A stretch of DNA of 64,000 nt, the filler included, from Lenisia limosa (taxonomy: Eukaryota; Protista; Breviatea), in NCBI GenBank assembly GCA_001655205.1. It is 11 parts of 11 records of this genome, joined end to end, with 100 filler letters (N's around TTAATTAATTAA, not from the genome) between each part and the next. Parts side by side here need not be neighbours in the genome. Positions count along the whole stretch, not along the records: positions 1 to 19,881 come from LPNZ01006309.1; 10 more parts are not named here. One strand, 5' to 3'. The position numbers were made by a program, and so were the translations under genes. The notes beneath the pieces are model-generated. The model saw nothing but the letters and a program-made list of their open reading frames with translations. It made no database searches and was not told where the DNA came from. Position 1 is the stretch's first letter. Each line of letters opens with the position of its first letter. Of this stretch, positions 1-20,600 are shown one piece after another.

Positions 1-296
1 AATTATTGTATAAATAGCATAAAATAGTAAGTTGTATACGTATATGATATATACATAGTAACGTGCTGCTTTTGACTGCTATGAGAAAATTTTATCTTTT
101 ATGACAAATTCAAATATCTCAACATCTCAACATTTTGGACTTGACCAAGGCCAGGAACTACTTTCTTCGTATTTCATTTCTCTCTTCACATATCCGATAT
201 AATCTCTATCATATTTCTCTCTTATTTTTTAATTCACGTCTAGAGCCCTCATAGATTTCAAACCATTCTGTAATTGTTCATCCTCATACCCACTAG

Positions 297-3200
297 CCTG
301 TTGATGGGTCATCTTCGTTGGAGATTATTGAGAACACTACAGGCCTCTACCATGGTTCCGTGGTTTACTACACTATTGACAAAAATGTATGTTGTACAGA
401 AATATTGAATTGATAATTCGTATGTGATCATATTACATTACACATTCCTATCATTTATTATATCATATACACTATGTAGTACGCAAAAATGGGGTTTGCG
501 TAAATCGGATGGAAATAATTAGGATACATTTATTTATTGATTTGCTTTTTTTTTCAAAGAAAATGGTATATTCAGTACTTAACAAGCATCTTTCTATACC
601 CCCTGAGATTGGCTCAGGTTTCTTGCTTTTTTACACCGTCTCAGATAGTAAGCTGTTTTATCTGTTCGTTTCATAATACCCCAACCTTTGATCACGACAT
701 GATAAGTACAACAGAATATTTAACCTGTATAGGGGTTGGCCATTCCAGTCAAGCGGATCCAGTTCGACTTTAGACTCGATGTAAGCAGAACTAACCCCCC
801 GAACCAGTTTTGGTATTTTGATTGCAAGAGAAGACACGACATTTTATTTATTGATTGGCCACTTTAAACTGTACTACCACAAGATGCGTTTTGGATATTT
901 TAACTAAATGATTTGTATTTTACGCTTTAGATGGACTGTATTGGACTCATCCAACTTTGCACTTTTACTGAAAGCAAGGCGTTTGCCCCCATCAACAAAT
1001 TAGTATGGTCATTATATCATATTCGACATGGTATCACATACTAACAACTCGATTCCACTCCCCTAACTTTTCATTATTTCTCATTCACCACAAAGGCCCC
1101 TCTTCTCGGGCTGGAGAAGGGTGAGAAGACCATTTGTCCAAATGACACCGCTCTCACAAAACTGCGCATCAGCGGATGGGATCGAAAATACGTCCACCCT
1201 TCGGCTATGGTTGGAGGGGGTGTTATGATGGGGTTGGAGGGGCATACATTAATTTATCTGTTCTGGGGAGGTGGGATGTTTAAAGAGCAAATATCAAAAA
1301 TCTTTTCGATGAAATGTTTTATGTAATAGTGATGAAGAGTTTTGTGCAATTTGTATTGAGGGAGAAATGAAATAAGTGATCATTTCACCACTTCTCAGAT
1401 TGAAGAGACCTTTGAACAGCCTCATAATGTCCCCTGGGAGGAATGGGTGGCAAGCTATCTCGCAACAATCGAGTGTACTCAACCCTCAAACTTAGTACTT
1501 GGGGTGCATCTGAAATTGATTTGATATACAATGACGGGGGGGAAAGTCTTGACTGATACATTCAGATTGAACCTTCGTGTTAATTTTGTTCACCATTTCA
1601 ACTCGAAAATGGTCATATGATATTATCTACCTCCTTACCCAAACCAGCTTGAAAAAGAGTCCAAGGAGATCCTTGAGAGTCTGACGCACTCGGTTCCTCC
1701 CTTCCTTGTTGAGGGTTATTTTGAGCCCAATTTCTATGCTATTGACCCCGAGGGCTGTACTGACCGTGACGATGCTATAGCAACAGTTGGGGGGATAATG
1801 TAGAACTGAAGACTTAGACTTGACCCTCGATGTGGGATTTTTAGGTTGTTATGGGGATTATAGGAGAGTGACAATATTTGTGGTGGATTGTGTCTTGTGA
1901 CTGTGGTGACTAGTGGAATTATGAGAGTTTGGTATTATTGGCTATTATATAGGGATGTTGCTAGTGAGGAGTTCCAATACACATGCACTCATTTTCATAT
2001 TTCCTTTCATCTCTCCTCCCCCCTCCACAACCCTCACCCCATTAGTGGACAAACCACACCACTGGCGAGGTATTTGTAGCCGTGGCCGTGGTGGATGTTT
2101 CTTTTTACGTCAAAAAACGCTCCACTATTGATAAATTCGTTGGTGGCTGTTAAAACTGTTTACTTTTGTTGAACAAACAGGGTTGAATTCAGGATGTTTC
2201 CAATTTTCTTCACATCCCCTTTCAGGCTATGCAACGACAAATGTCCATCTATCCCCCAGGTATGTTCATTGGTTGAAAATAGATGAAAATTGGGGGTTTA
2301 ATTATTCTGAAACCTGGTTTTAGATGGGAAATTTGCCGTTGACTTGGTTTAAACTTTTCTTGGTTTATCATTTTATATTCAATTATATGCCGATTTTTAT
2401 GTTAAACAAGCTTCAAGTGTCATTGTGATTCATTTCAGTATTTGCACATACACAATTGTCTGCTTCAGATATCAGAGACTGTTCATTTTGAGCTATTCTT
2501 CTAACCTCAAAGGTGTCCCTGCTGTATCCATGCTACCCGTCACCCTTACAAGCAACCTGTCAATATCCTCAGTGGTTCCTTGCGTGATTGTGGGCAGTGG
2601 TTTTTGGGATGCCAAAAGACTTTGAATACTATATACAAAGAGGGAATAAGTTTAACTCTAGTTTCTGTTTTTCTCCTTGTTTAATTATTTATTTACGGAA
2701 ATAAAGTATTTCTTCTGAAATATCACGTAATTTTGTTTAATTTTTGAAACTAAACCGATTCTACTTATGTTAAAATTTGTTAGGCACATGATTATTTAAA
2801 TTTATATAATTCTATATAATTGTGATGGTGTTGGCGGCGTCGGCTTTTACCTTTTTCACTACTCCTGTTGCTGATGTACATATCTAGTGGTATGCAAGCC
2901 TGACAACCATGAAGAGCGAATTCACCATCGGGACTGTGAATGTTAATGAGTTAACTTATCCATTTGTGAGTTTCTTCGTTTGTATTGTGAAATAAACATG
3001 GCGGGAGAAACATGTTATTGAGAAATGGAAGCATTATTGTTTAAAAGGGCGGGTATCATGTTTGGAACTATCTCCCAAACAACTCTCTGTGATAGTAAAT
3101 AAACTAGTGCTCCGTGGAATTAATTTTGTGAGGACATTAATTGACAAATTGGCAATTAAATTGTCTGAAAAGAGGTTCTGGTTACACTATGTCCCACGTC

Positions 3201-6200
3201 AACTTTTGAAATTATTTTTTCCTTCAATTGCAAGGAGTCCTAACATAAACACACTTGCTATCCCACATAAAATTACCCAATTTAGGTTGGAGATAATCTG
3301 GCCAACCCTACCATCAAAGCCTTTGTGGATGCAGCAGAGACAATGCTCAAAATGCGGCGTGATTCTCCCAAGCCTGGATTCCCTGTCCCGTCTAGAGAAA
3401 CAATCGTCACACCTGAAGTAAGTAAAATGTTTTTTTTTTATTTTTGTTGATTAAGGGCAATCAATACTATTTATATATTATCAATGTGATAGAAGGTATT
3501 GCCTTGTTCATGTATCATTACAATTGAAGAATGTTATCAAAGCCATCCACACTACAATCCAATCCATTTTATTATTATTTTTAATCCATTTTAGGGGCTC
3601 GTAGAACCAGATGACGCCTGGAAAAACCCAGTTGCCCATGGCATCGTAGAGCAGTTTATGATATCTGCAAATTTGGCTCTATCACAGCAATTCAAGGAAC
3701 ATGAAATTGCCGGAGTTTTCCGTTCGCAAGAGAGGGAGTACAATGATGTAGGCCAGGATTATGATATATCGATATATTATAGCATACCATAGTATGTAAT
3801 GCTATTATGTAAAGTATATTGTTATTTTTGTATTTAATATATGTAGATCTCATAAAGTATACTACATGCAATATAGTGTAATATTTGCATATGATCTACG
3901 ATTTCTAAGACATACTATATTACTATATTCACATCCCCCTGCAAATACTCAAGTTACATTTCCCAGCTCTTTATTCGGTCCATGTTCTCACCCCACAAGG
4001 GACTTCGAACAGTGATGGGACGTCACAATGAAACTATCCGCTCCAACAGTCTTAATACCTCCACACAAGCCCATCTGGATCTTGATGCTGATATGAAGAA
4101 TGTGGGCTGCGGGGGTGTATGACAAATAAGCAGCGGGGGTTGTCAAGCTCCAATTTGTTCTATTCAGTTCACCATTAGGGCTTCACTTCCGGTTGGAAAA
4201 TACCGGTAATATTATATAATTTTCGAGGATTTATTAGGCAATTCAGCCGTTTTCAAACTGAAGTGAAGCCCTATTCATCAAACATTTCAGCACTGCTCTC
4301 CTGCCTTCTACACCACATCGCCCAATCAACCTCACGATACCATCGGAACTGAAGGGCCGTACTGTACATGGACGTCTCCTCTTCGTCGCTACGTTGATAT
4401 TGTTAATATGCGACAGTTGAAGGAATATCTACTGAGTAATGTCGTCTCCGAGGTATCAGGACGCCGGGTTTGGAATTAGTTTCCATGATTGTCATTTTCC
4501 TTTAATCTTGGATTTGGGGCTTGGCGACAGATTATTTGCTGAATCTGTTTAAAGGCATTCTCACACATGATATTTTAGGGGCATTCTGATAAGGAAATCA
4601 ATCTTGCCGTTGCACTTGCAAATGGACCCACTCTGCAGCTGCCTAGTGTTGGCGGTGTAAATGTGTTATTATTTTGGCTTTTGGTAAAAATTCACTTCAA
4701 TAAATCATTTTACAATCATTCACTAATAATCAATACAACTCACTAATCATTTTCATCATATGTCACCTGCTTCAGATCACGACTGCTCTTATGGAAGACT
4801 ATGTTGGCAGAACCCTTTTAACATCTGCATTACCCACGAATTACAAAGTCAAAAACGTGGCGCACTACGGATTTGAAGTAAGTCTTTCTCCAGTTATTGC
4901 ATTCACCACACTTCTATCAAGTGATTGTCATCTTTAACAATTTCAGCACATGTTTGTAAACCTCTTGTTATATTTTTAATTTAACCAGAATGTTATTATA
5001 TATTTTTTTTGGGAATTTCTCCAAAGTTGTTAGCATTTGTTTGATTCATTCTTGTCACACAATTGTTTGTTTGTTCCAAAAGCAGTCCCTTACATTGCAG
5101 GGTTACGTCCCGAGCCACCCAGGACTCTCGGAATTTGGCCGTTTAATCGAAACCGCAAACCTCACTACTAGAAGTTCAGGAGAACCTGATGTAGGAATAA
5201 ATAACTGTTATTGATAAGACTTGAGATACGGTTTTTGAAAATGCCCGGTCCTAGGATCTGACTTACCTGGTGTATTAATGATTATTTATTGAGTACAAAG
5301 TAATGGTTGGTCTTGATGTAGTAGTGGTGGTGCTACAAGCACAATAATTGAAATTAATTGAAAAAATTTGATATTATAGTGTCTATAGTGGGGTTTTTGT
5401 TACATTATACCCAACGTTAAGAAATTATATGGTGATGTAGAGGAAGTGCACTAACTAGGGATTCACTTAGGTTTGAAAAATCCGATCAAATTTATTGTTT
5501 GTGTCAAAAATTGAATCAAAAACTTGTTTGATAATTACGACTTCTAGATGCTTCTCTTTGAATACACATTTTTCAATATTGATTGTTGTAGTATATAGAT
5601 AATGGGTTACTCTTCAACGTATTCTGCGATACCACTGGCCATGGCGGCAAGCATCCTGCTCTAAATTACAAAGACCGGATTGTCAAGGCTGGTGCAACAC
5701 TCAAAATCCGCATGACCTCCACCATCGCAACCACTAATCCAGTGAGATGGGTGGACAATGTACCCAATAAGGTTAGATACAAAAAAATCAAGGTAGGGGT
5801 TCTCAATCTGTTTGAGAGTGGGTTGGGCAATATGTTTCATTTTGATATTTAAACACAATATATCATATAATATAACATATTTAATTGATAAACAGAACAT
5901 GGATATCAATATAATGAAATGATGTGATACTGAATACGTAGAAAACTATAAAAGGGAATTACCAATAAAATATACATCAATCTGAGATCAATATTTGTTA
6001 GAAAGGGAGGGATGGTTCTTCTTTGCAACCACCGTAAACCTCACCCTGAAGTGCCGCATCGGGAGAAAGCAACCAACACCTTCCATAGATCTTGTTCAAA
6101 TTGCACCTGGTGCCATTATCTGTCACAATCACTGCGCAGTAAGAGGATTAGATTTTTCACATTTAGTAATGTGATGAAAAGTCATATTTACTTACTCTAA

Positions 6201-9200
6201 TGCACTCTCTTCAACTATTTGGTGATCAATATTTCGACCTCCCCCCATGTATTGAACCCCACACACACAAAGTCAGAACAATACATGAACAGAACGATGT
6301 TGTTTTGTTTTATATTAATTTTCATAATTTACTAATCCCGCAGGACCCTGCTGCCGCCTTCACGCCGTCCCCCTTCCCCCCGGTTCAGCAAATTTATGAC
6401 GACTTTCAGCAATGGGGTGATGTTGCCAGAAAAGTTGCATTGGTGGGGGGGGGGATTTACTGAACTACAATACGAATAACACAGAGATGGACTTGTTTGT
6501 TTGAGGGAAACAGTTTTTCATTTGGTTATCAATTTGATTCATTCAGATAGACAATATATAATATGATATAGTATGTATCTTATATATTGACTATTATGTG
6601 TATTGAAATTGTTCCTCACCCTCTTTTACAAGCCGGTTCAGATATCTTACATCCAACATCCAACAAATTTGTTGGATATATGTTGAATATGATTACCAGA
6701 CTGTTGGTGAAAGTTTAATTATTGAATGAGAATAAATTATTGGTATTTTTTTCGTGACAATTAGATATGCCCTATTTACCCGCCAGCGAGTTTCCCAAAA
6801 ATTCCGCAAAATTCCTATTTTGCGAAAAAATATATTCGCAAACTGGTGATCCACATTTTTACAACAAAAAATATTAAAAAAATCAACAATCTGCAGAAAT
6901 ACTGTTTTTCCTCGAAAATTCCGCAAATATCCCGAAAAAATACAATTTTTCTGCTCGGGAAAATAGGGCATTTTGACAATTTGAAGGAATTTTTGATTGA
7001 TGATTGTGAGACTAGGGCTCTACGTTTCGAAAATACCCGTATAATATCGATAGTTTTCGGTGAATTATCGAGAAATTCAGTCATTTTTTTACCGAAGTGA
7101 AATTAAGTCATCTTCTGGTAATCTCAACAAGTACAATGTGATACAACATTGTAGAAATAGGAAATGTCGATTACATAACCCTATACTGTATCAAGAAAAA
7201 AAGATGTAGAGGAGTGAGAGGAGAACTTAATTACAATATTTGTTGGATGATGCCCCATTATATTTATTTCTTACATTTCACCCCAACCAGGCCTCAGGTG
7301 CTTCAAAACCCTTCAATGAAGACGCGTTCTTCAAGACAGAGGAAGGAGGAACTATCTGTCACATTCAGCGCTTCAACGTCCGCTTAACCCTCAAATCTAT
7401 CAAAGCAAGCGAAATTGTCTTCGAAATTAAGGATAATGTAAGCGGGAAACGGAAAGAGCCACACAATACTCTCTCACATTTTCATGTATTTTCACAATTG
7501 ATCTAACATTTTGAATTGTTTTTTGCTGAGTATACAACTATTCTATCTGAAATAGATTCTGCTATTTCAATAGGGGTAAGTGGGATTGATAAATAGTTAC
7601 GTTTAACAACCTGGATTGGAGCTAGACCATCTGTGTACTCTTGGTATCAGAAAGGTGGTTTGGACATCCTGGTAAAAATTAGAAATTTCGTGATGAAAGC
7701 CTTCATATTGTCTGAAATTAGAAAAGTAAAATCCCAAGTATTTTTAGAAACACCAACAATTGATAAGTATTAGTGTTCTGTTTACACTTCAGATGGAAAT
7801 CCCGTGGCCGCTTAATTACACCATTTGCTATGCTTGTGTACGTGTGCCGTCTTCTGATACCGTTGATGAGGTTGGAGCGTGCGTTCAGTTTTGGAGGAAG
7901 ATAGCATCATATAATCTTTATCTTTTTCGGGAGAGGAGGTTTTTTTTACGATTATCTTATGAAATGAAATGCGTATTTACTTACTGTATCAATATGTATC
8001 CATCCATATTTTTTTGATTTATAGATTTGATAGTTGCCTTCATTGAGCTAAATAATACCCATTAGAGCACATTAATAATTACAATTCCCAAGTTTTCTAC
8101 AATTAGTTGTCACTACTTAGCGCATCAGCCTTGACCACAATCTGACAGTCTACCACGGCATTTTGACAGTTCAAGAAGGCCTGATCCGTTGTACACCTAA
8201 CCTAAGCTGTCCTGCTGACCTTATGAGCCCGTTTATGGCGGCAGGACAGAAGCGTCGTTGTGTAGTCGAAGCTGCGCCTATTGCAGTCCCCACTGTGCGG
8301 GCTCTTGAGACCATTGAAACCCTCCAAGTTAGTTCCAGGTTGATCAACTTCAACCTGTATGGGTCAGTACCTGTTATAGTCGTCAAACTTTCAAAATACT
8401 CACGTCTCAGCGTGGCCATGTAAGTAACCTCGAAATCTGCAAGCACATTGCCTTCGGTAAGCAATACTCAACAATAATTCCATTTTTGAGCATAATACTG
8501 GATTAAGTTAGAAAGTTAGTTTACATCAGGAATCTAACTGGATCTGTTTACTATAAGATATCATGCATTCATATGAGAATATACCGTATTCAAATTCTAA
8601 ACTCTGAATTTATGTCAGGCAAGTAGTCATGATCAAGACATAACTCAAACTTTTACTTTAATAACACCTCTTAACACTATAATTTTTTCATTTTTGAATT
8701 GATTTTTAATATACAGCTTTTTAATTTGCTCTGAACTTAATATTAGGTACGGACTCTCTCGAGGAGTCACCATCTGACGCAACTCCCCTCGAGGCCGAGC
8801 GCTACAACCGCCACAGTGGGGGGGGCATTTTGACTTGTGTGTGTAGGGATGTTTCATGAGTATACCGTCGTTATTTTCTACATTATCTGTTATGAAGACC
8901 TATCCCGTCACTTTTTACAGCTGAGAATCCCCTCAATGACAGTCAACTCCGAGCTATTAGCTCAGGAACTAAGAATCCTATTACGCTTATTTGGGGCCCA
9001 CCCGGTGAGAGGTGGTGTATTTTTGACAGAAATGGTCGCAATAATTATCACAATATATCTTGTTTGATAATAGGATGACAGGGGTGCTCAAAATTTGAAA
9101 AAGTTGACAACATACAATATCATCTGTTCTTAGAGGAAAAGTTCTTCATTTGGAAACCCAATTTTACAGACAATATGAGACGCAAAACTGCATTGTGTGC

Positions 9201-12200
9201 AAAGAATTTGTAATAGTTACGAATTTTGGAATTGGTTTCACATGGGTTTCAAATCCCAAAAAATCTCATACATCATACATCTACATATATTTTTAGGGTT
9301 TTTTCGGATAGGGGGAGCGTTAGTTTTCACAAATTGTAGGAACTGGAAAGACCACTACCGGCATCGTTTTGGCCTTAGAACTTCTGGAGAAGTACCCCAA
9401 TACTGTCATAACTGACGAGACAAGCAATACCAAGACAACTGTCAATAGGTTGGATGAGGGGGGTGGCTAAAGAAGATGGTGTAAAAAATAACATACTTGC
9501 TTTTAAAAGGAGAACAGTAAATCTAATATATGGATACTATATATCAGTTAATAATGTTAGGATCATGATATATGTGTGTCCTCAAAGCTCCGGACATCAT
9601 TCAAAATTCCCGGACACATCAAAACTCCCGGACAGCTNNNNNNNNNNAAAATGTCATAAATCCGTGAATTTGGTCTCCCGAGGTTTCATTATTTGAATAA
9701 GATTGCATTATTTGAATAAGATTGAGATTACTTTAAAAAACAGAAGGGAAATAGGTTTCTGGGTGGTTTATGGTGATTTTGTATGGAAAACTCAAGCTGT
9801 CCGGGAGTTTTGATGAGTCCAGGAATTTTGAATGATGTCCGGAGCTTTGACTATACATATTGTCCTTTTGTATATTTCTGAGAGATCGATAAGCTACCAC
9901 TTTATGAAGAAATAACCGCAGCCATCACTTTCCTTTACATCACTCTATACAAAAGCTATGAATTTATCTACCTGAGCTGATCACTTGGGTTTATATTCTT
10001 CACCAATTATATACACTGACGCGATACGTTAGCACAAATTTTGAAATTTGTCTTTAGTCAATCGTTTCGGAACTTCCTCGGTCAGTTTATCGAAGACAGT
10101 TTATTTAAATACTAACCTTCATATTCTGTAGTGTTTTATATGCTGCGACTTCGAACAAAGCAGTCGATGTTGTAGCTGAAAGACTATATAAAAACCTTCC
10201 TGCTGACCAGTTGGGTGGTGGTCTCAATTGCTGTACTTAATTCTTCTTTTCAAAAATATGTTGAGTGAATTAATTAATGGGGAAATGTTAAGAATGAATT
10301 AAGTGGTTAAAATTTCTCAATTGTTGTTAAAATATGAAAATATTTGAACATACTCATCATACACCAATGCTGACTAAGTAGCATAATTGTTCGCGTGTAT
10401 CCTCGTAGCGCTGAAAAAATTGCGATTCCAGACATGAAGAGACACTATGACAAACATCGCCCAGTTATTGTAGGCAAGCCTTGGATTTATTTTTGTGATT
10501 TTTTTTTGTGTCCAGACAAGAAAGGAATTTAATCTGGTTCTATTATAATGGGATTGGTAATGCTGAAGACACTGTGGGCGAATTGATTATGGTTATATTT
10601 GTGTTCAATATAAATTTTAATTTTGAAATTCCTTAAATTGGTTTCTGCAGATGTACTATAATTGATGTTGTTATTGTTCTGTTTTTCATTTAACCTTAAA
10701 AGGGAGCAGATTTGTAGAGAGAATTTCGGTAATGATTGTTTCTGTTGAATGAAAATATTAATTTCAGTTTGTGAAAATATTGATGTTGAATATCAGGCTC
10801 TGGAAGTTCCTCCCCCACTTCCCGAAGATCTTAGGACAATTGCATTACATCGTCAAATTCGAAGCAGCAAAATATGCAGTCTTTCAAGTGCAATTTCAAC
10901 GTATGCAATAACAGCATTCCACGAAATTTTCTACGTATCTGTGTAATTAATTTTTTGAAAAAATTAATTGACAAAATTTGAAATTTAAGTGTCTGAAATT
11001 TCGTTCCCATTTCAATATGTTGCACTTCAATTTTTGAAATTATTTTTCAATTAATTGCACAGAGCCCTAATATTTTCCCATGATCAAGTATAATATATCA
11101 CAATTGTTCACAATTCAGAATATTTGTTGTAACATTTTATTTGTTGACAGTTCTTTTATTTCCTGATAAATTTTCAGAATGGAGAAGATGCCTGAAATGG
11201 AGGAAGGTGATTTCAAGGCTTATTTGAAGCTTATATCACGGGCCGAACAGGAAGGTAGATGGAGCTTATACCTTAAGGCTTCTATACAGTCTCAAAAAAG
11301 AACGAATTTCTTGATAAATTCTCGATAAATATCGATATTTCACCGGACCGTAAGGAAGTACTAATTATGCTACTTGATTTAAGGGTGGGCCTTGTCCTTA
11401 GCTCCCCTGACCTTCCATATTAATCCGTGATATCGATCTGAATTTCTTTTGTTACACCCCTCCCATTTTCCATCACACACAGATTCCCTCCTTCCCGTCT
11501 TTTTACCCCTTTAAGGTTTCAATTCGGTTCGAAAAAGACCAGTAAAATATCGATAATTTTCGAGGATTTTTCGAGAAATTCTGTCTTTTGTCGAACAGAA
11601 GTGAAGCCCTAATACCCCCCCCNNNNNNNNNNNNNNNNNNNNNNNNNNNNNNNNNNNNNNNNNNNNNNNNNNNNNNNNNNNNNNNNNNNNNNNNNNCGAA
11701 TCAAAAACACCTTTAGATCTGTGATCGTAGACGAGGCCGGAAATAGGTGTGTTTCTTGCAAAATTCTCTTCGGATTGGTTTTGGTTGACAACATCGCTAC
11801 AGTGCATCGCCATTGAATTCTTGTAAACGATGGAATTTCAATATTTTTCATGGAAATCCCATGGAATTTGATGGAAATTTGAAGGATTCCCATATATTAC
11901 AAGGAATCCTAAGTCGACGCGCCGCAGTGATTCCATGTTCCTTTCACCATTTCTTGTTCCACTTCCTAATTCCACTTGCTCAGTCATTTTCTGACTCATT
12001 AGTGTTGATGCGGATATCATGATGCCTGTTGTGAAAGCTACTGAAAGAGTGGGGATTTGAAGGGATATTATTTTTGATTGCTGCTGGTATATTACCTTTG
12101 TTAACCGCTCACAGGTGACTTTGATTGGAGATCCGAAACAGCTACCCCCCGTGATTACCTGCTTCATTGATGCGGTAAGGCTTGGTTCGTACAAGCATCC

Positions 12201-15104
12201 ACAAAGGCCTAGTAACTAACACTGCATTTTGTGTGATTGTGAGTAAAGCTCTAAGATCACCTTCATCTTATTCACCCTTAACCACCATATTCACCATCAT
12301 TTCCACCTTCCACATATCAATTATTATTGTCATCAGTATCATCATTTTCATCATTATCAGGTTAAAAAGGCAGGGTGCTACACGCTCTTTACAAGGCACC
12401 TCGAGAACAAGCATGTTGTAATGCTGGATACCCAAGTGTGTGGATGCTTTCAGGGGATTATCAGGAGAGTTTTTTTTTGGGGGGGGAGTTTAGCCTCACT
12501 AAATTAGCACTAGCAAATAAGAGGGATTTCATTCGTTAATCGCTAAGCATTAACAACCAAAGGAATAAATAGAACCAAATTTTCTGAGATTGAGGGGTTT
12601 TCAGTTTTTTGATTCCCACAGTATCGAATGCATCAAACCATCTGCCGCTTCCCCTCAGACCACTTTTATGAGGGAAAACTCATAAGTCACCCATGCACTG
12701 AGAATAATAACAAGTGAGGGGAGATTGTGACTGTGATTCTGCGGTAAAGTTTTGAACTAGGGCTTCGGCCAGATACAATCTTATTTGTTATTTCTCATTG
12801 CTAATTCTCAGGGCACTGAAAATTCCCAAGATCTTTGGAAAGAATCGTGTCTGTTTCTTCAATTGTTCCAGTGGTGTGACTGTTCACTACAGCGTAGGAG
12901 GTGTAATTACCATGCCTTCTGATATCATAGACCTCCTTTATGTCAAGTTATTTGGTATTTCCAAACTTTTGTTGTATTGTGTATGAAATTGGTTTTTGCA
13001 CTTGAAACAGACCCAATTTTTTTGCAAAATATTTCCGAATGCAGAACTGTAACTGCCTTATTAGGAAGCCCCAAATTTTATTAACTTGCCTTATACAGAC
13101 TGCTGCTACCGAAGCTGAGTTGAAGGCTCTGAGTACGGACAGAAAATCGTCTTGTAATGAAGGAGAGGCTCGTGCTGTTGTCAAAGTGAGTGGGAGCTTG
13201 GATGTTCCAAATTTTACAGTGCTGTGGGCAAATCATATCATACACCTTACATGCATACTTAGGGCATCACTTAGATTCAGAAAATAACTGAAATCGATTA
13301 ATATTCAATAAACTATCAATGTATTTTTGACCATTTATCGATACTTTTCGTAGTTTGAATCACTTTATTTAAACAGGACACATTCCGATGAATCATCAAT
13401 ATATTTCATTCCTTCCTTAGGTTTTGACCCTCATGCTTCAACATGGAGTCAAGGGTAAAGATATCATGATCATCACCCCCTACCGCGCACAGGTTGGGGG
13501 GGCAACAACTAGGTGACCGCAGTATCGCAGAGAATATTTGTGTCTAATAATAGAATTAAAATGGAAATGTTAGAGGCAAGCATGCATGATCATTTGAGGA
13601 TTACAAAAGCTTTGAAATACACTTTGATACAACTTTTGCCCTTACTCAATCAGGTCTCATTTTGCTCACCTTCATTTGACTGGCAAACTATCCACTTTTA
13701 GTCAACAGAGCTATACAATTTTCAATTATTCCCTTAAACTTACAGGTTATAATAATTAACTACCACAGGTTAACATGATCAAGCTGCTAATTGGGGCTGT
13801 CCTTGAGCAATATGGCCAAAGCGAAACTGCGGTGGGGGATACAGAATAAAATTGAATTATTTTACATTTTACATTTTTTGATGTGCTCTCCAAAAAAGAC
13901 TGAATTCGATAAATCCACAAATATCGATATTTTACATGTCTTGAGGAACCCAAAGTGACGCTCTAGTTCCCAAATTCATATACTTTGTATGAAATTACAT
14001 ACACTGTGATATATACATCATACACTTTTGTCTTATATTCGTGAGATAACCTGCTTGGTATATTATGATATTTTCATAAAATATACAATTTGCTAATCCT
14101 GTACTTACCATATCTAGGTTCATGTCGGAACAGTAGCCACGGCACAGGGTAGTGAAGCTGACTTTATCATTAACTCTCTTGTCAAATCTGATGGAAGATC
14201 ACTAGGCTTCACTACGGACGGTTTGTTTAATTCTTACCTTTGACTTCTTGGACCATTTCCCTGTACTCTCATTTTCCACGCAGTGTTATAATACCTTATC
14301 GTGTGGTAATTGATCAACAAGTCTTAATGAAACTCTGATCTACCTGGAATGAACCCTCGTCTTATCTTATCTACAATCATCACTTTGACATTAAATCGAT
14401 GAAATTATCATATCACTAGTGGAGGGTCAAAACATAGTGTTTTTGAGTAGTTTTTGCGGCACACCATTTCACCACAAATTGTTACCTAATAGTGATATAT
14501 ATTTCTTTGAAGGCTTCTTTAAATGTTTACAAATCAATTTCAATATTACTGAGCTTAAGTTATCCATATCATATTTTATGTTCTGAAACAAGAGTTGTTC
14601 TTAAAAAAGTCTTATACTATTTTTGCGACATAGAAATCGCGCTTTCGATTTGATAGATCATTTAGATCAAATGACGAATGTTGCTCTCACACGCGCGCGC
14701 CATGGTCTTTGCGTGGTGGGTTGTTGTTATACTATTTGTAAAATGTTATTAGAATAATGAAGACAAAATACTTAGCCTAAGGTTTTTAATAATACAGTGT
14801 AATTACCCTTGGTAACCCTAAAATCGAAGATACACATATAAATTTGAGTACACTCGGGTGCATCGACCCGGAATTCCCTGTTATTATTTGGGAATCCCAT
14901 AAGTTTCTTCAAATTTCTATACTTGGGATTCCAACGTTTTTTTAAAGAATCCCAAGTCGATGCGCGTGGTGTAATAGATTTTATTATTTTTATGATTTAT
15001 CAATCACCCTTCAGGTTGGCAATGCTGAAGCAGTGGGCCACTATGTCACATGGCAGAACTTTATTCTCCATTGCATCAAACATGGCTATCTCAGGAATAT
15101 CTAA
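297..15104 (+). CDS. HELZ2-like: RNB (RNase II/R-family) 3'-5' exoribonuclease fused to a C-terminal Upf1-like SF1B helicase; HELZ2-like; multi-exon, 5' end lies upstream of the window
   Basis: Hand-spliced GT-AG exons. RNB part: YAIDPEGCTDRDDAI (catalytic motif at 1741-1776), AHGIVEQFMISAN (~3630-3675), YCTWTSPLRRYVDIV (~4360-4405). Helicase part: LNDSQLRAI...LIWGPPG|TGKTTT (exon ends 9004, next starts 9340), VLYAATSNKAVDVVAERL (~10130), VIVDEAGN (11717-11746), LIGDPKQLPPV (~12120), Q|YRMH (~12620), IITPYRAQ (~13470), GTVATAQGSEAD (~14130), NVALTRAR (~14680). Last exon 15015-15104 reads VGNAEAVGHYVTWQNFILHCIKHGYLRNI*. Confidence 0.9.
4176..4273. mobile_element. MITE family A copy (intronic), complete
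   Basis: TA-GGGCTTCACTTCC...GAAGTGAAGCCC-TA: terminal inverted repeats with TA on both sides. Confidence 0.85.
6767..6971. mobile_element. MITE-like element, family E (~205 bp)
   Basis: Terminal inverted repeat ATGCCCTATTTACCCG ... CGGGAAAATAGGGCAT. Only one copy seen in the window. Confidence 0.55.
7013..7105. mobile_element. MITE family A copy, diverged
   Basis: TAGGGCT...TTCGAAAATAC...ATATCGATAG...TCGAGAAATTCAGTC...ACCGAAGTGAAA matches the family A consensus. Confidence 0.7.
9582..9855. mobile_element. MITE family B (long TIR), interrupted by a short N gap
   Basis: ~55-bp inverted repeats: TCAAAGCTCCGGACATCATTCAAAATTCCCGGACACATCAAAACTCCCGGACAGCT at 9582-9637 and its near reverse complement at ~9795-9850. 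A second copy is at 30321. Confidence 0.8.
11512..11611. mobile_element. MITE family A copy
   Basis: TAAGGTTTCAATTCGGTTCGAAAAAGAC...GTCTTTTGTCGAACAGAAGTGAAGCCCTA. Confidence 0.8.
14849..14973. mobile_element. MITE family D copy
   Basis: TA-CACTCGGGTGCATCGAC ... GTCGATGCGCGTGGTG-TA imperfect TIR. A related diverged copy is at ~11797-11926. Confidence 0.6.
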
Positions 15105-17160
15105 TCTCCTTCTTGTTTTATTTAGACTTTAAGTCGGTTTTTTTTTCTTTTTCTTTTGTTTTTGTGTATAAGGTTTAGAATGTATCATGGTTTTTTTCTA
15201 AAGAGAGTGGGGCTGGGGGAAATGTTTCTTACTATTGATAATCAAGAGAAAATACCGATTCATGACGTCAAGTTTTGAATTGCACCTCTCTTGAGTCGCA
15301 GTATAAAGAAAAGTAACTATCTGATGTATGAAACAATAATAAGCTCACTTGATATGAAATATTGGTAAAATAATAGAACATGGAATTGACCCTAATCAGA
15401 ACATGGTGCCTATAAAAGAAAGCAAGGGAACATCTGTTGAACTACTTAGCAGCCAACAAGAAGTTTTCGGTGACACTATCTTTAATCTACTTGTACTATT
15501 TAAAGAGTATTTGGTCAGTATAAAAATCACAACACTTACTCTCTTGCTTCCAATAACCTCTTTTAAAACAGTAGCATAAATTAAGCGGGTTACGCTCGGT
15601 TTCGACTCTATATGGTGTATCACCAATTGTTTCTGGATTATGGTAAACAGTAAGCGATAGTCAATGAATGAAAAGTGCGTTCGCGACGTAATCTCTTTCT
15701 AATTTATTTTTTGACCAATGAGTAAATATCTTAGGTGGTCAGAGTTCACACCCCACTACCGAATTTGAAATTGTTCAAAACCAAACCGTACAAGCAAAAT
15801 CTCTTGTTGTATGTAATATCTATGCGCCTTTGTTTTTGAGTTTATTTAGCTTCTTAGCAGTTATGGCAACTGTAAAGAAGAGGAATTTCATTTGTTTTGT
15901 TAGATTGGGAGGCGGCCCAACTTTAGCGGGCGCAGGCCCCAAGGCAGAGTCAAGACAAGGCAAGTCAAAGGTGGTCACAGAGCCACACGGGCTCTATCCA
16001 TGCTCTATCACGGTAGAAGGAAAAGAGCGGCATTTTTTTTTTCGGCAGGTTTCGTAGAGACTCGGTTGCCGTGAGAGTCTTGGGAAGCTCCNNNNNNNNN
16101 NNNNNNNNNNNNNNTGCCACTCCTGCTGTCTGTCTCTCATTCAGTCAGCTAAGTTACTCAGTCACCTAACAATTAATTAAAAAAAATATGAACAAAGTGT
16201 TGTTTGTTTAGTCGTTTAGTTATATCAACTATATTATACATCCATCAGACTCTCTCACTAAACTGGACTCACGGTTGGACTGGGGAATCTATNNNNNNNN
16301 NNNNNNNNNNNNNNNNNNNNNNNNNNNNNNNNNNNNNNNNNNNNNNNNNNNNNNNNNNNNNNNNNNNNNNNNNNNNNNNNNNNNNNNNNNNNNNNNNNNN
16401 NNNNNNNNNNNNNNNNNNAATTAATAGTCACAGACAGTAGGTTTTGGCTTATGCTAGGGGAGTAAACTTGTTTATATTTATACCCCTAGGCTTCTTTAGG
16501 TTTTGTCTACGACTTCGGTCAGCTATTTTTTTTATTTTTCATTGCTATTGCGGTGTACATATATGAAGGTTTTCTCTTCTTATCCTTTTGGTTATTTGTC
16601 GATGTCATTGCCGTATGGAATTTTCGTTTTTCCGTCATGATCCAGTGGCCGCGTAATTAATTCATTGATTCACCAGAATAGGTTTTCTCACGGTTTTCTG
16701 CTGCTACTTTAGGTTATGAATGGCTTTCTTGAGAAGATTGCATTTGTATTGGNNNNNNNNNNNNNNNNNNNNNNNNNNNNNNNNNNNNNNNNNNNNNNNN
16801 NNNNNNNNNNNNNNNNNNNNNNNNNNNNNNNNNNNNNNNNNNNNNNNNNNNNNNNNNNNNNNNNNNNNNNNNNNNNNNNNNNNNNNNNNNNNNNNNNNNN
16901 NNNNNNNNNNNNNNNNNNNNNNNNNNNNNNNNNNNNNNNNNNNNNNNNNNNNNNNNNNNNNNNNNNNNNNNNNNNNNNNNNNNNNNNNNNNNNNNNNNNN
17001 NNNNNNNNNNNNNNNNNNNNNNNNNNNNCTCCCACGCGAAATATTCTGATATTCCAGGCTCTTCTTACAGCCCTCTGCACATGCCTTCCAAGTCTAGGTA
17101 GTCTCGGGCCATCAGGTTTGGTGGGTGTTGCCAGAGCTTTCCCGTTTTGATGGTCGTCTG

Positions 17161-17241
17161 TAGGGTATCACTTTGGTTCGATAAATCCTCGAAAACTATC
17201 GATATTTTGCCGGTATTTTTTCGAACCAATGTGAAGCCCAA
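17161..17241. mobile_element. MITE family A copy, internally deleted
   Basis: TAGGGTATCACTTTGGTTCGA...ATAAATCCTCGAAAACTATCGATATTTT...TCGAACCAATGTGAAGCCC. Confidence 0.8.
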
Positions 17242-17621
17242 GTCGTCCGTAAAACACATAATTTTCTAGATAGGGTGTACTCTGTGTGTAATTCCAGATA
17301 TCAATATTATACATACTATATTTTTTGTTTCTCATCTCCACAAGTAAGGATTTAACAACAGTACGGAGTAAACCTTTCCATTTTAGTAGAGATTAATCTT
17401 CGGTTCTTAAAGCCAGGAAAATATTTATATTTTTTGATGATTAACGTGTTTTTTTTGTAATCGAAAAGGAGGCTATCTTATTCTTGTTTTTAATGCCGTC
17501 ATTTTAAACTAGCTTCAGTTTAAATCAATGCAAGTCAAACAAACCCAGAATCAAAATTATGACATACACGTGAGTCGAAATCAACAAAACAAAAACAGTC
17601 CAGCTAGCCATCATCTTTCAG

Positions 17622-20600
17622 AAATCTTCGTGAGTCCCATCGGATCAAATCAAAATGTTGGAATCAAGGAAGATGCCCCTTTTGCTACCATTGAAAAAGC
17701 CCTCAGCTCTGCTGGTCAAGGTGAGATTCAGGATTGGTTTTCTTAATCTCTCAATATCCATTGAAATATTGAAAAGTTTCGAACAATCATCAAGTACTGA
17801 AAAAATTCACCATTTTATTGTTTTTTCAATAAAACGGGATTTCTTGTCTAATACACAGGAAGCACAATCTTCCTCAGTCCTGGGGTGTACCGCGAAAACA
17901 ACCTGAAACCCCCTTCAGGTTAGTCTAATTTTTTTTTGAATTTTCTTGTGTTTGACGTGTGTTCTTGATATTTCAAATCTGTGTACTTGCAATAGAATTA
18001 TTGGGATTCCATCAGACTTTACGTCGATTTATTTGACAATATCAGGGACTTCTGGAGCGCCAGTTACGATTACTACTAATCCGTCTAGTCCGGGTAAAGC
18101 AGTGATTACGTCAGCTTATTCTGTGAGGAGAGAGGGGGGGTTGTTTGCCTAATAGAAAGCAAAAATATTAGGCCAAATTGTTATGTCTTTTTACTCAATG
18201 TTTAGGCTGGAGAGTTGATTTGGACGTCCTCGTCGACTCTCGAGGGAGTGTATGAGGCAAAGATACCGTCTGAGTGGAACTGGTCAGAGTCTCCCAAGAT
18301 TGCTTATGTGGTTAGTGTTTCCATCCGTGTACTCAAACAGGAAATTTTCGCCTTGGATACTTTAGCATTGAATAATGAAATAGGACTTCAATCTTAATTT
18401 GACTAATAGAAAGAATATTTTTTTGGTCAATTGGGCAATTTGGTCCTCTCTCAAGGCTTTGTTCTCAACTGTTTAATCTTTGATCCACTTGAGTTTTCAG
18501 TGATGATTAAGAAAAGCCAAGATCCCCCCCCCCCCCTTCAAAATAGATTTCACAGTCTTGTCACACTGCTTTATATTTCAGAGCAGAGAACCCAATTTTA
18601 GTAAAACAGCGTAAAACCGTCCAAATTTATTGTTTTATACCTTGGGCTTCCCTATGTTCTGAAAAAGACTGGTAAAATATCGATATTTATCGAGGAATTA
18701 TCGAAAAATTCTGTTTCTTGGAACCGGGGAATCTCTATTAATACCTAATACTCTAGCGGCAACCTTACTGGGGGGGGGGTGAAGATGGAGCTTGGATAGT
18801 GCGGCTTTCTAACTAAGCAGGTTGATGCCAACAATAGGCCGGAAACTAGGATGTACATCGCGCGGTCTCCCAACCATAATGTGGGTATGGGACTTCTTCT
18901 AAGTTCGGTTCACGCATTTTACGTAAATTTACGTATCTATAATAGTTTTGTGCAAATTTCTGTAACATTCGTGTACCCGAATGGTCCTTACTGGCTCTTT
19001 CTTGGGGGATTCTTCTTTATTTCATTGACATTCTGAAAATTCTATAATTGATTTTCTAATTATCACGTGGTGACCCCAATTATACTTATGTTATTATTAG
19101 TGCCATTTCAAATATACCTACACACTCGGATGCACTGATTGTTAACTTTTGTGCTCATTGTTTTAATACTTGTCGTAAAACTTGGCCATGTGTACATTTA
19201 TCAAAAGAGGATATGTAAGTACAATTCCTCTTGAAAGTCGGCCTTATGGGGATTCATATTGCCGGACACTTGTGGATATTGGGACAATATTTATGCACAT
19301 GATCATTATCAGTGGTGAAGAATAACACTTTTTCACGACATCTTCAGGTTCCGAATCGACATCGAGAAACTGAGCATTGGTACATGGCTGATGGCGGGGC
19401 TTTTGTAAGCAAGAGGTCATTGAACCATTTCTGAATCATCGAAAGGGACTAAAATATAGATATTGTTCATGCAAATATTCAAATGTTTATCAAATATTCA
19501 ATTAAAATGTCTTATATTGGAACGCTGTGTTGTGTGAATGATATTGTGTTTTTCGCTTTTGTGGAATAATATAATTCGCTTTTGTGGATAAATAAAACCG
19601 TTTCTCCTGCTTATCAAGTAATACAGCTTTATTATTTATTTTTTCTCACCCACGCAGAATGCTGAGTTCATAGAGTTGGAATGCGAATGGTTGAGTGATT
19701 TTTCTTTTTACAATATTTAATTAATCCTCGAAATCTATCGATATTTGATAGTCTTTTCTAAACTTAAGAGAATCCCTACCTAGGTGCCATGACGGTTGTT
19801 TAGGTGGACTCTTGTACGCCTTCTGCAAAGACTTATAATGAAGAGTGTGACTCCTCGTCAGCGTATGTGGGGGGTCAATAANNNNNNNNNNNNNNNNNNN
19901 NNNNNNNNNNNNNNNNNNNNNNNNNTTAATTAATTAANNNNNNNNNNNNNNNNNNNNNNNNNNNNNNNNNNNNNNNNNNNNAGTATTTACCCCTTGCCTC
20001 CTCTCATGAAGTTACCCCCCCCTCCCCAACGACCCAGCCAACCCTGACATCCAGTAGGGCTTTCGTTTACCCTTGCTCAGAATGGCGTTGACGTCAGTGA
20101 TACACTCGCGAATTATGGGCCTAGAACTGTGAATTACAGGGACTATAATTTAAACTTATGGTTTATATTGTCATAGGAGTCTAAGTTCTTTATTCCCCTC
20201 GATTAGATTATGTCATATTCAGGCAGTTACTGGGAGGTATATCTATTCTAGTGAAGATGCATATAGCTATGTAAGATACATATATGCCTCCAAGGTTAGT
20301 GACACTATTTCAAATTTCAAATTGAAACCAAAATACATCTCATACAACAATTCAAATAACCCCAAACCTTAAGAAATGAGTCATCATGCTTATATTTATT
20401 ATAAATAAGAAAAAGTAAACTAATATTGTGTGTTTGTGTTTATAAGAACACAAGATATTTGGAGAAATCTGGAGTCTGGAATCTGGAAGTGTCAGTATGT
20501 AACACACAGATCTATTCTTTATTTTCTTTTCTCACAACTACTGTGAGGTAGGTACTCGGTAGCCACTTAAGGGTACTTGTACTCGACTTTCTTTTGTGCA

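Follow-up and report, generated by a model that had tools for sequence, protein, structure and literature searches.

An expressed gene of apparent HELZ2 type encoding an RNB exoribonuclease domain and Upf1-like helicases

Domains of the gene and its upstream extension

We analyzed a gene in the window, a 64,000-nt stretch of assembly GCA_001655205.1 (filler included), whose positions 1-19881 (record LPNZ01006309.1) are AT-rich eukaryotic DNA of ~36% G+C with five runs of N. The gene model spans positions 297-15104 on the plus strand and comprises 40 exons with ~1,250 open codons, which encode an RNB exoribonuclease domain followed by an SF1B, Upf1-like helicase (helicase 2). A divergent SF1B helicase (helicase 1) lies upstream of the window. 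The overall order (helicase 1, exons in the cold-shock position, RNB, ~380 residues, helicase 2) is the HELZ2-type layout. The locus holds a real, expressed and apparently functional gene of HELZ2 type, and the window probably contains its 3′ two thirds, with the 5′ remainder outside (Table 1).

The exon model was built from RNA junctions, from splice-site matrices trained on those junctions and from conserved motifs, and it ends at the stop codon at 15102-15104. We counted 36 exons from 1648 onward and four further exons upstream, starting at 297. Exons 297-1494 contribute 116 codons, exons 1648-11254 contribute 860 and exons 11697-15104, past the second of two assembly gaps within the gene (gap 2), contribute 276. 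Introns are 83-848 nt long, nearly all in phase 0, and GT-AG with the exception of one GC-AG intron at 10474. Many donor sites have GTNGG in place of GTAAG.

Stop-free exon pieces matched Pfam families in collinear order: RNB (2046-4476), AAA_11 (8896-12216) and lastly AAA_12 (12613-14754). Taken singly, two of the pieces surpass Pfam's own cutoffs, which, together with the collinearity, goes far past chance and argues for a real gene. The succession of an RNB domain and a Upf1-like helicase with motifs I-VI, read from the sequence in the initial annotation, was borne out, with all of the motifs on the plus strand.

Exons of the RNB domain, which has nine in all, were recognized by Pfam and by a local RNB profile, which matched the same exons in the same order. 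Motif I (IDPEGCTDRDD) carries four acidic residues, spaced D-x5-D-x-D-D, that we take to be the equivalents of RNase II D201, D207, D209 and D210; it is followed by motif IV (TSPLRRY), and both motifs, which the initial annotation had named, were found, at 1741 and 4372. Segments 30-55, 192-231 and 279-324 of the Pfam RNB profile align collinearly with 2046-2150, 3595-3789 and 4267-4476, and the exon piece 4267-4476 scores 42.6 bits, above the cutoff of 29.3. The R..S.Y/MLP region of the domain is kept (AMQRQMSIYPPGVPAVSMLP). The splices from 3417 to 4452 are confirmed by an RNA contig, and the RNB exons outside RNA support are validated by a one-piece, end-to-end alignment of the spliced RNB model (residues 114-432) with the whole RNB domain of the RNase II-type protein P0005 (residues 239-547; E 7e-16). 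The active-site motifs are intact, and 3′-5′ exoribonuclease activity is predicted.

The top local match of the spliced RNB was a different protein, P0003, on contig JACCDO011774345.1 of GCA_013565615.1 (L004). That contig is intron-less and dense, and the neighbours of P0003 are genes for PCNA, an O-fucosyltransferase, a Ski2-like helicase, a Cu/Zn SOD and eIF4E. By gene content it looks like a giant virus inside a eukaryote assembly.

The ~380 residues between the RNB and helicase 2 (4579-8815) gave no match to any Pfam family, S1 included. By analogy with HELZ2, exons within 4579-5741 may encode an S1-like portion directly after the RNB. Exon 8121-8327 found no usable match in the ESM Atlas and no relative in a scan of JGI metagenomes.

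Helicase 2 contains, in order, GPPGTGKT (motif I), AATSNKAVD (Ia), VIVDEAG (II), LIGDPKQLPP (III), QYRMH (IV), TVATAQGSEAD (V) and NVALTRAR (VI), with motif starts on the plus strand at 9339 (GTGKT), 12127 (GDPKQLPP), 12619 (QYRM) and 14689 (TRAR). AAA_11 profile segments 2-28, 55-75 and 232-254 fall on 8896-9075, 10109-10237 and 12061-12216. AAA_12 segments 23-53, 99-122, 139-173 and 176-193 fall at 12613, 13421, 14118 and 14605, and the first of them, at 37.3 bits, exceeds the cutoff of 27. The PDB structures nearest to a helicase 2 exon are Sen1, IGHMBP2 and UPF1. Three junctions of this domain (8815/8921, 9004/9340 and 9448/10132) are confirmed by RNA.

An exact look-up of an open reading frame (ORF) of the window returned the same DNA on an unbinned eukaryotic contig of an ENA metagenome assembly, ERZ3820729 NODE_440 (24,672 nt), which is identical to window positions 1-9632 and reaches 15 kb further upstream. 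Helicase 1 lies in this extension. Open pieces of exon size on the same strand carry a full, ordered set of SF1 motifs: LN..Q..AV, GSFGTGKT, VLICAHSNSTAD (with ICAHSNSTAD), FDLIVIDEAAQ, RIILLGDHMQ, NYRSVPQI..LFY, VATVNGMQG and FNTAISRAK. A computed exon chain, an approximate model taken from the stricter run (a low-penalty run over-predicted exons), ties the pieces of helicase 1 in frame to exon 297. The four 5′ exons of the window (297-1494) occupy the place that cold-shock/OB domains take in RNB proteins; a Pfam search of these exons gave no match, cold-shock domain included.

The initial annotation had called for recovery of the upstream exons, in search of a first helicase or zinc fingers. 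The helicase was recovered with motifs I-VI, and of a zinc finger we found, further upstream on the same strand, one weak, exon-like CCCH piece (zf-CCCH, E 0.013, below cutoff). A regular-expression scan of 9 kb upstream detected no complete zinc finger; the most 5′ exons may lie beyond the end of the contig. The HELZ2-type architecture that had been proposed is strengthened by helicase 1, which completes the published helicase-RNB-helicase order (PMC10516660).

Table 1. Features of the gene, its surroundings and the RNA contigs. Positions are those of the window except where L002 or L003 is given; a slash within an RNA contig marks a splice joint.
Feature	Position	Strand	Basis or remark
CCCH-like piece CLKHRNHYKWEECTFAH	L003 about 4060-4139		zf-CCCH
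Helicase 1, divergent SF1B	L002:4598-9023 (window -6342 to -1917)	+	motifs I-VI in order
Four 5′ exons	297-386, 733-780, 1096-1209, 1399-1494	+	all phase 0; AG/GT borders; in-frame join to exon 1648
RNB domain, 9 exons	1648-1785, 2046-2138, 2226-2259, 2513-2571, 2888-2965, 3286-3417, 3595-3747, 4000-4101, 4291-4452	+	Pfam RNB, local profile, RNA
RNB motif I	1741-1773	+	four acidic residues
RNB motif IV	4372-4392	+	motif search
Inter-domain exons	4579-4647, 4776-4877, 5101-5190, 5592-5741, 6344-6442, 7291-7437, 7793-7870, 8121-8327, 8411-8456, 8747-8815	+	polyA RNA contigs, 100% identity
Probable intron between RNB and helicase 2 halves	7438-7792 (355 nt)	+	predicted; keeps frame; length typical of gene
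Helicase 2, exons part 1	8921-9004, 9340-9448, 10132-10209, 10382-10473 (GC donor), 10768-10900, 11178-11254, then gap 2	+	AAA_11
Helicase 2, exons part 2	11697-11746, 11928-11982, 12115-12174, 12361-12435, 12622-12713, 13065-13185	+	
Helicase 2, exons part 3	13421-13492, 13769-13831, 14118-14220, 14666-14715, 15015-15104	+	ends in the stop codon
GC-donor intron	10474-10767	+	AG/GCAAGC context; predicted from frame and motifs
RNA contig 1, 887 nt	3417/3595-3747/4000-4101/4291-4452/4579-4647/4776-4877/5101-5190/5592-5646		
RNA contig 2, 198 nt	6378-6442/7291-7423		
RNA contig 3, 421 nt	7700-7870/8121-8327/8411-8453		
RNA contig 4, 1158 nt	8751-8815/8921-9004/9340-9448, then letters equal to window 10132 onward		
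Gap 1	9638-9647	.	inside intron 9449-10131; between inverted-repeat arms
Gap 2	11623-11696	.	takes intron end and ~60-75 nt, the 5′ part of the motif II exon (..RSVIVDEAG)
Inverted repeat	9572-9637 and 9795-9860		66 nt, 91% complementary; flanks gap 1 within intron
Dispersed repeat (MITE/SINE-like), intronic	4194-4253, 7028-7087, 11531-11590, 18661-18720 (+); 11304-11344, 17177-17226 (inverted)		

Transcripts, gaps and neighbouring sequence

Two runs of one study contain this stretch: a small polyA metatranscriptome from 2016 (X1), the only one found to hold the gene, and a DNA run (X2). We compared both with window positions 3580-9570. The RNA run yielded four contigs, 100% identical to the window bar one base, and the last of them extends 900 nt past 9448. 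Exact exon borders were set from the sequence, with one to two ambiguous letters per joint. Together the contigs confirm 13 introns, all GT-AG, including one across the first gap (gap 1). The remaining introns within 3580-9570 showed no RNA, so neither DNA nor bulk pre-mRNA contaminates the library. The RNA-supported exons form an open frame of 555 codons between the RNB and helicase motif I.

The single differing base is at 7811, where RNA contig 3 (one contig, depth 5.6) has T and the DNA has C, a change from Leu to Phe in exon 7793-7870. An allele, a different individual or editing are all possible.

Each gap lies next to copies of a dispersed repeat. The two sides of gap 1 belong to one transcript, in frame, because RNA contig 4 joins 9448 to 10132. 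The ENA contig stops at 9632, in the left arm of the inverted repeat around gap 1. Repeat copy 11531-11590 precedes gap 2, and from the first base after that gap the coding frame is open (RIKNTFRSVIVDEAG). Continuity across gap 2 is indicated by successive helicase regions that follow one another on one strand in the order expected; presumably ~20-25 helicase residues are missing there, judging from other Upf1-like helicases. Exact look-ups of four ORFs, aimed at gap 2 and the contigs to its right, returned no record. The summed DNA word depth at 6980-7179 is ~24,000, compared with ~35 for single-copy sequence, and the dispersed repeat gives rise to DNA "joints" that are spurious and link 4235-4278 with 7036-7066. 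We found no ORF for a transposon protein.

Downstream of the gene, exon-like open pieces on the plus strand at 17513-18394 (..IFVSPIGSNQNVGIKEDAPFATIEKAL.., ..TISGTSGAPVTITTNP..) may belong to a neighbouring gene. They resemble the N-terminus of right-handed beta-helix proteins; a Pfam search of the downstream ORF pieces, these included, gave no match. An Rfam search also gave no match.

One gene or two, and its relation to HELZ2

We consider it likely that the RNB and helicase 2 halves belong to a single fused product, which would entail removal of intron 7438-7792. The single spliced reading frame proposed in the initial annotation holds for the 13 introns confirmed by RNA, over which the frame is open, and lacks coverage at 7437/7793. 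Several observations weigh against fusion at this joint, the sole junction in the stretch from the RNB to motif I that is bridged by no RNA contig. RNA contig 3 begins at 7700, 93 nt inside the intron; the segment 7700-7792 has stops in three frames and no ATG, and an in-frame ATG (7793) stands directly after the acceptor. That the joint keeps the frame is weak evidence, because nearly all introns are in phase 0. The start of contig 3 looks like an internal transcription start or partial intron retention, and a helicase-only mRNA from an internal start near 7700 would be an equally good fit, if only as one isoform. For human HELZ2, a formerly proposed short isoform is now viewed as incompletely spliced pre-mRNA (PMC10516660). 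Carried further, these observations would divide the locus into two (or three) neighbouring genes. One would encode an RNB protein whose last exon, 7291, is read through as far as the stop at 7504-7506, 22 codons past 7437; the other, a separate helicase, would be transcribed from ~7700 and translated from ATG 7793. The two proteins would work independently or, like Dss1-Suv3, in a non-covalent complex. We regard separate genes as unlikely. RNA coverage ends 14 nt short of donor 7437, and 7424-7699 has none, although a polyA transcript of the RNB alone would be expected to show its highest coverage there, at its 3′ end; this argues against a terminal read-through exon. Donor 7437 and acceptor 7793 sit exactly at the frame-keeping positions; their scores in a leave-one-out test equal the median for the other sites and place both within the top 3% of background GT/AG. 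The spacer between the two genes would be only ~200 nt, compared with introns of 83-848 nt; 7438-7792 contains no AATAAA or ATTAAA, though none follows the final stop either; and HELZ2 is a precedent for the fused layout (PMC10516660). A word search with exon 7291-7437 for protein fragments bridging 7437/7793 returned no candidates. An assembly artefact, in which runs of N join unrelated contigs and the RNB and the full helicase are not true neighbours, could appeal to two gaps within the gene that both lie next to dispersed repeats. It is extremely improbable: the RNB, the inter-domain stretch and helicase motif I are all contained in a single ENA contig that has no gaps and is identical to the window over 9,632 nt, gap 1 is crossed by an RNA contig, and the pieces flanking gap 2 are consecutive parts of one helicase domain.

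A single fused gene is most likely a further, divergent member of the HELZ2 family, and here too there are points on the other side. Helicase 1 is placed in the same gene as the RNB by the computed exon chain rather than by RNA. AAA_11 matched its motif II exon (E 1e-5), the only exon of helicase 1 to reach significance in Pfam, so that this domain is identified mainly by its motifs, and BLASTP of helicase 1 against helicase 2 found no significant similarity. A HMMER search of 1.84 billion cluster representatives with RNB exon 4291-4452 (a 54-residue query) recovered no HELZ2-sized relative, so the case for homology to HELZ2 is an architectural one. Only 8 matches of the same search passed E<=1e-3; a pair of these were repeat junk, the others generic RNB proteins of 283-1194 residues without a helicase. 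The relatives of this exon include yeast mitochondrial Dss1/MSU1, an RNase II-type metagenome protein and a giant-virus-like RNB. The want of a close relative implies either that the proteome of the lineage is outside the databases or that the protein is very divergent. Such matches, all RNase II/Dss1-type or giant-virus-like and none with a helicase, would also be expected if a single fused gene had arisen independently in a non-animal eukaryote, on an RNase II/Dss1-like RNB and convergent with animal HELZ2. The motif IV exon points the same way, its nearest PDB structures being E. coli RNase II (aligned motif TWTSPIRKY) and yeast mitochondrial Dss1, ahead of Rrp44. We nevertheless find convergence very unlikely, since the whole three-domain order and the possible CCCH finger match HELZ2, the 54-residue query is too short for deep relationships, and CpG depletion and the intron-rich structure fit an invertebrate animal. 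The observed/expected ratio of CpG is 0.68, with TG and CA at 1.12-1.17 (window 1-19881 plus 15 kb upstream), which suggests depletion by methylation and is a weak hint; combined with many short phase-0 exons it is compatible with an invertebrate animal and proves nothing. The non-animal host proposed in the initial annotation, in a lineage where the fusion may be unreported, thus gained no support. There is a low but appreciable chance that the host is non-animal or deep-branching, in which case the helicase-RNB-helicase arrangement would be older than animals or would have two origins, this one on an RNase II/Dss1-like RNB.

Published HELZ2 consists of Zn fingers, helicase 1, two cold-shock domains (CSDs), the RNB, an S1-like part and helicase 2, both helicases being Upf1-like, and is known from many metazoan groups, among them vertebrates, corals and molluscs (PMC10516660). 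The gene described here shares with it a succession on one strand of a Upf1-like helicase, an RNB, an intervening stretch and a second Upf1-like helicase. Exons in the CSD position, a possibly S1-like portion of the intervening stretch and a possible CCCH finger upstream may add to the likeness. Both sets of ATPase motifs and the RNB active site are intact, and the expected mechanism, helicase-assisted 3′-5′ decay of structured RNA, would be the same. The gene differs from HELZ2 in its very divergent sequence, in a motif IV of the RNase II/Dss1 type, in having one weak zinc-finger-like exon where human HELZ2 has six fingers, and in keeping all four RNB aspartates, the second of which is Asn in human HELZ2 (PMC10516660).

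Like the yeast mitochondrial exoribonuclease mtEXO (Dss1 and Suv3), the gene pairs an RNase II-type RNB with RNA helicase activity for the degradation of structured RNA, as far as its domains predict, and proteins of the Dss1 family are among the nearest relatives of its RNB exon. Unlike the gene studied here, with its SF1B Upf1-like helicases, mtEXO is made of two separate polypeptides, and Suv3 is an SF2 helicase. Motifs I-VI and AAA_11/AAA_12 are common to UPF1, IGHMBP2, Sen1/SETX, MOV10 and HELZ, from which helicase 2 departs in having DEAGN rather than DEAxQ at motif II; none of them is known to carry an RNB domain. With Dis3, Dis3L2, RNase R and RNase II the gene shares the four acidic residues, TSP(L/I)RRY and collinearity with a complete RNB. 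Those proteins have no fused SF1 helicase, and Pfam recognises no CSD or S1 part in the present gene.

Possible mechanism and meaning

The two helicases and the RNB of HELZ2 cooperate in degrading structured or duplex-protected RNA (PMC10516660). By analogy with the human protein, the helicase or helicases of this gene would spend ATP on freeing RNA that is structured or duplex from proteins or from its complementary strand. A 5′-3′ SF1B motor would clear structure or the complementary strand, the freed 3′ end would enter the RNB channel, and the RNB would degrade the freed strand from that end to nucleotides in a Mg-dependent reaction. Coupling of helicase and RNB, the substrates, and an antiviral or anti-transposon role are likewise carried over from the human protein and are suggested here on that basis.

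HELZ2 is one of few proteins that unite a processive RNA-degrading domain with RNA helicases, and vertebrate HELZ2 is an interferon-induced factor that acts against viruses and LINE-1. A divergent, expressed copy with four catalytic aspartates and two complete-looking helicases would help to define the ancient features of the family. Should the host prove not to be an animal, this antiviral architecture would have an earlier origin; for now, the gene is a further member of a family known from vertebrates, corals and molluscs.

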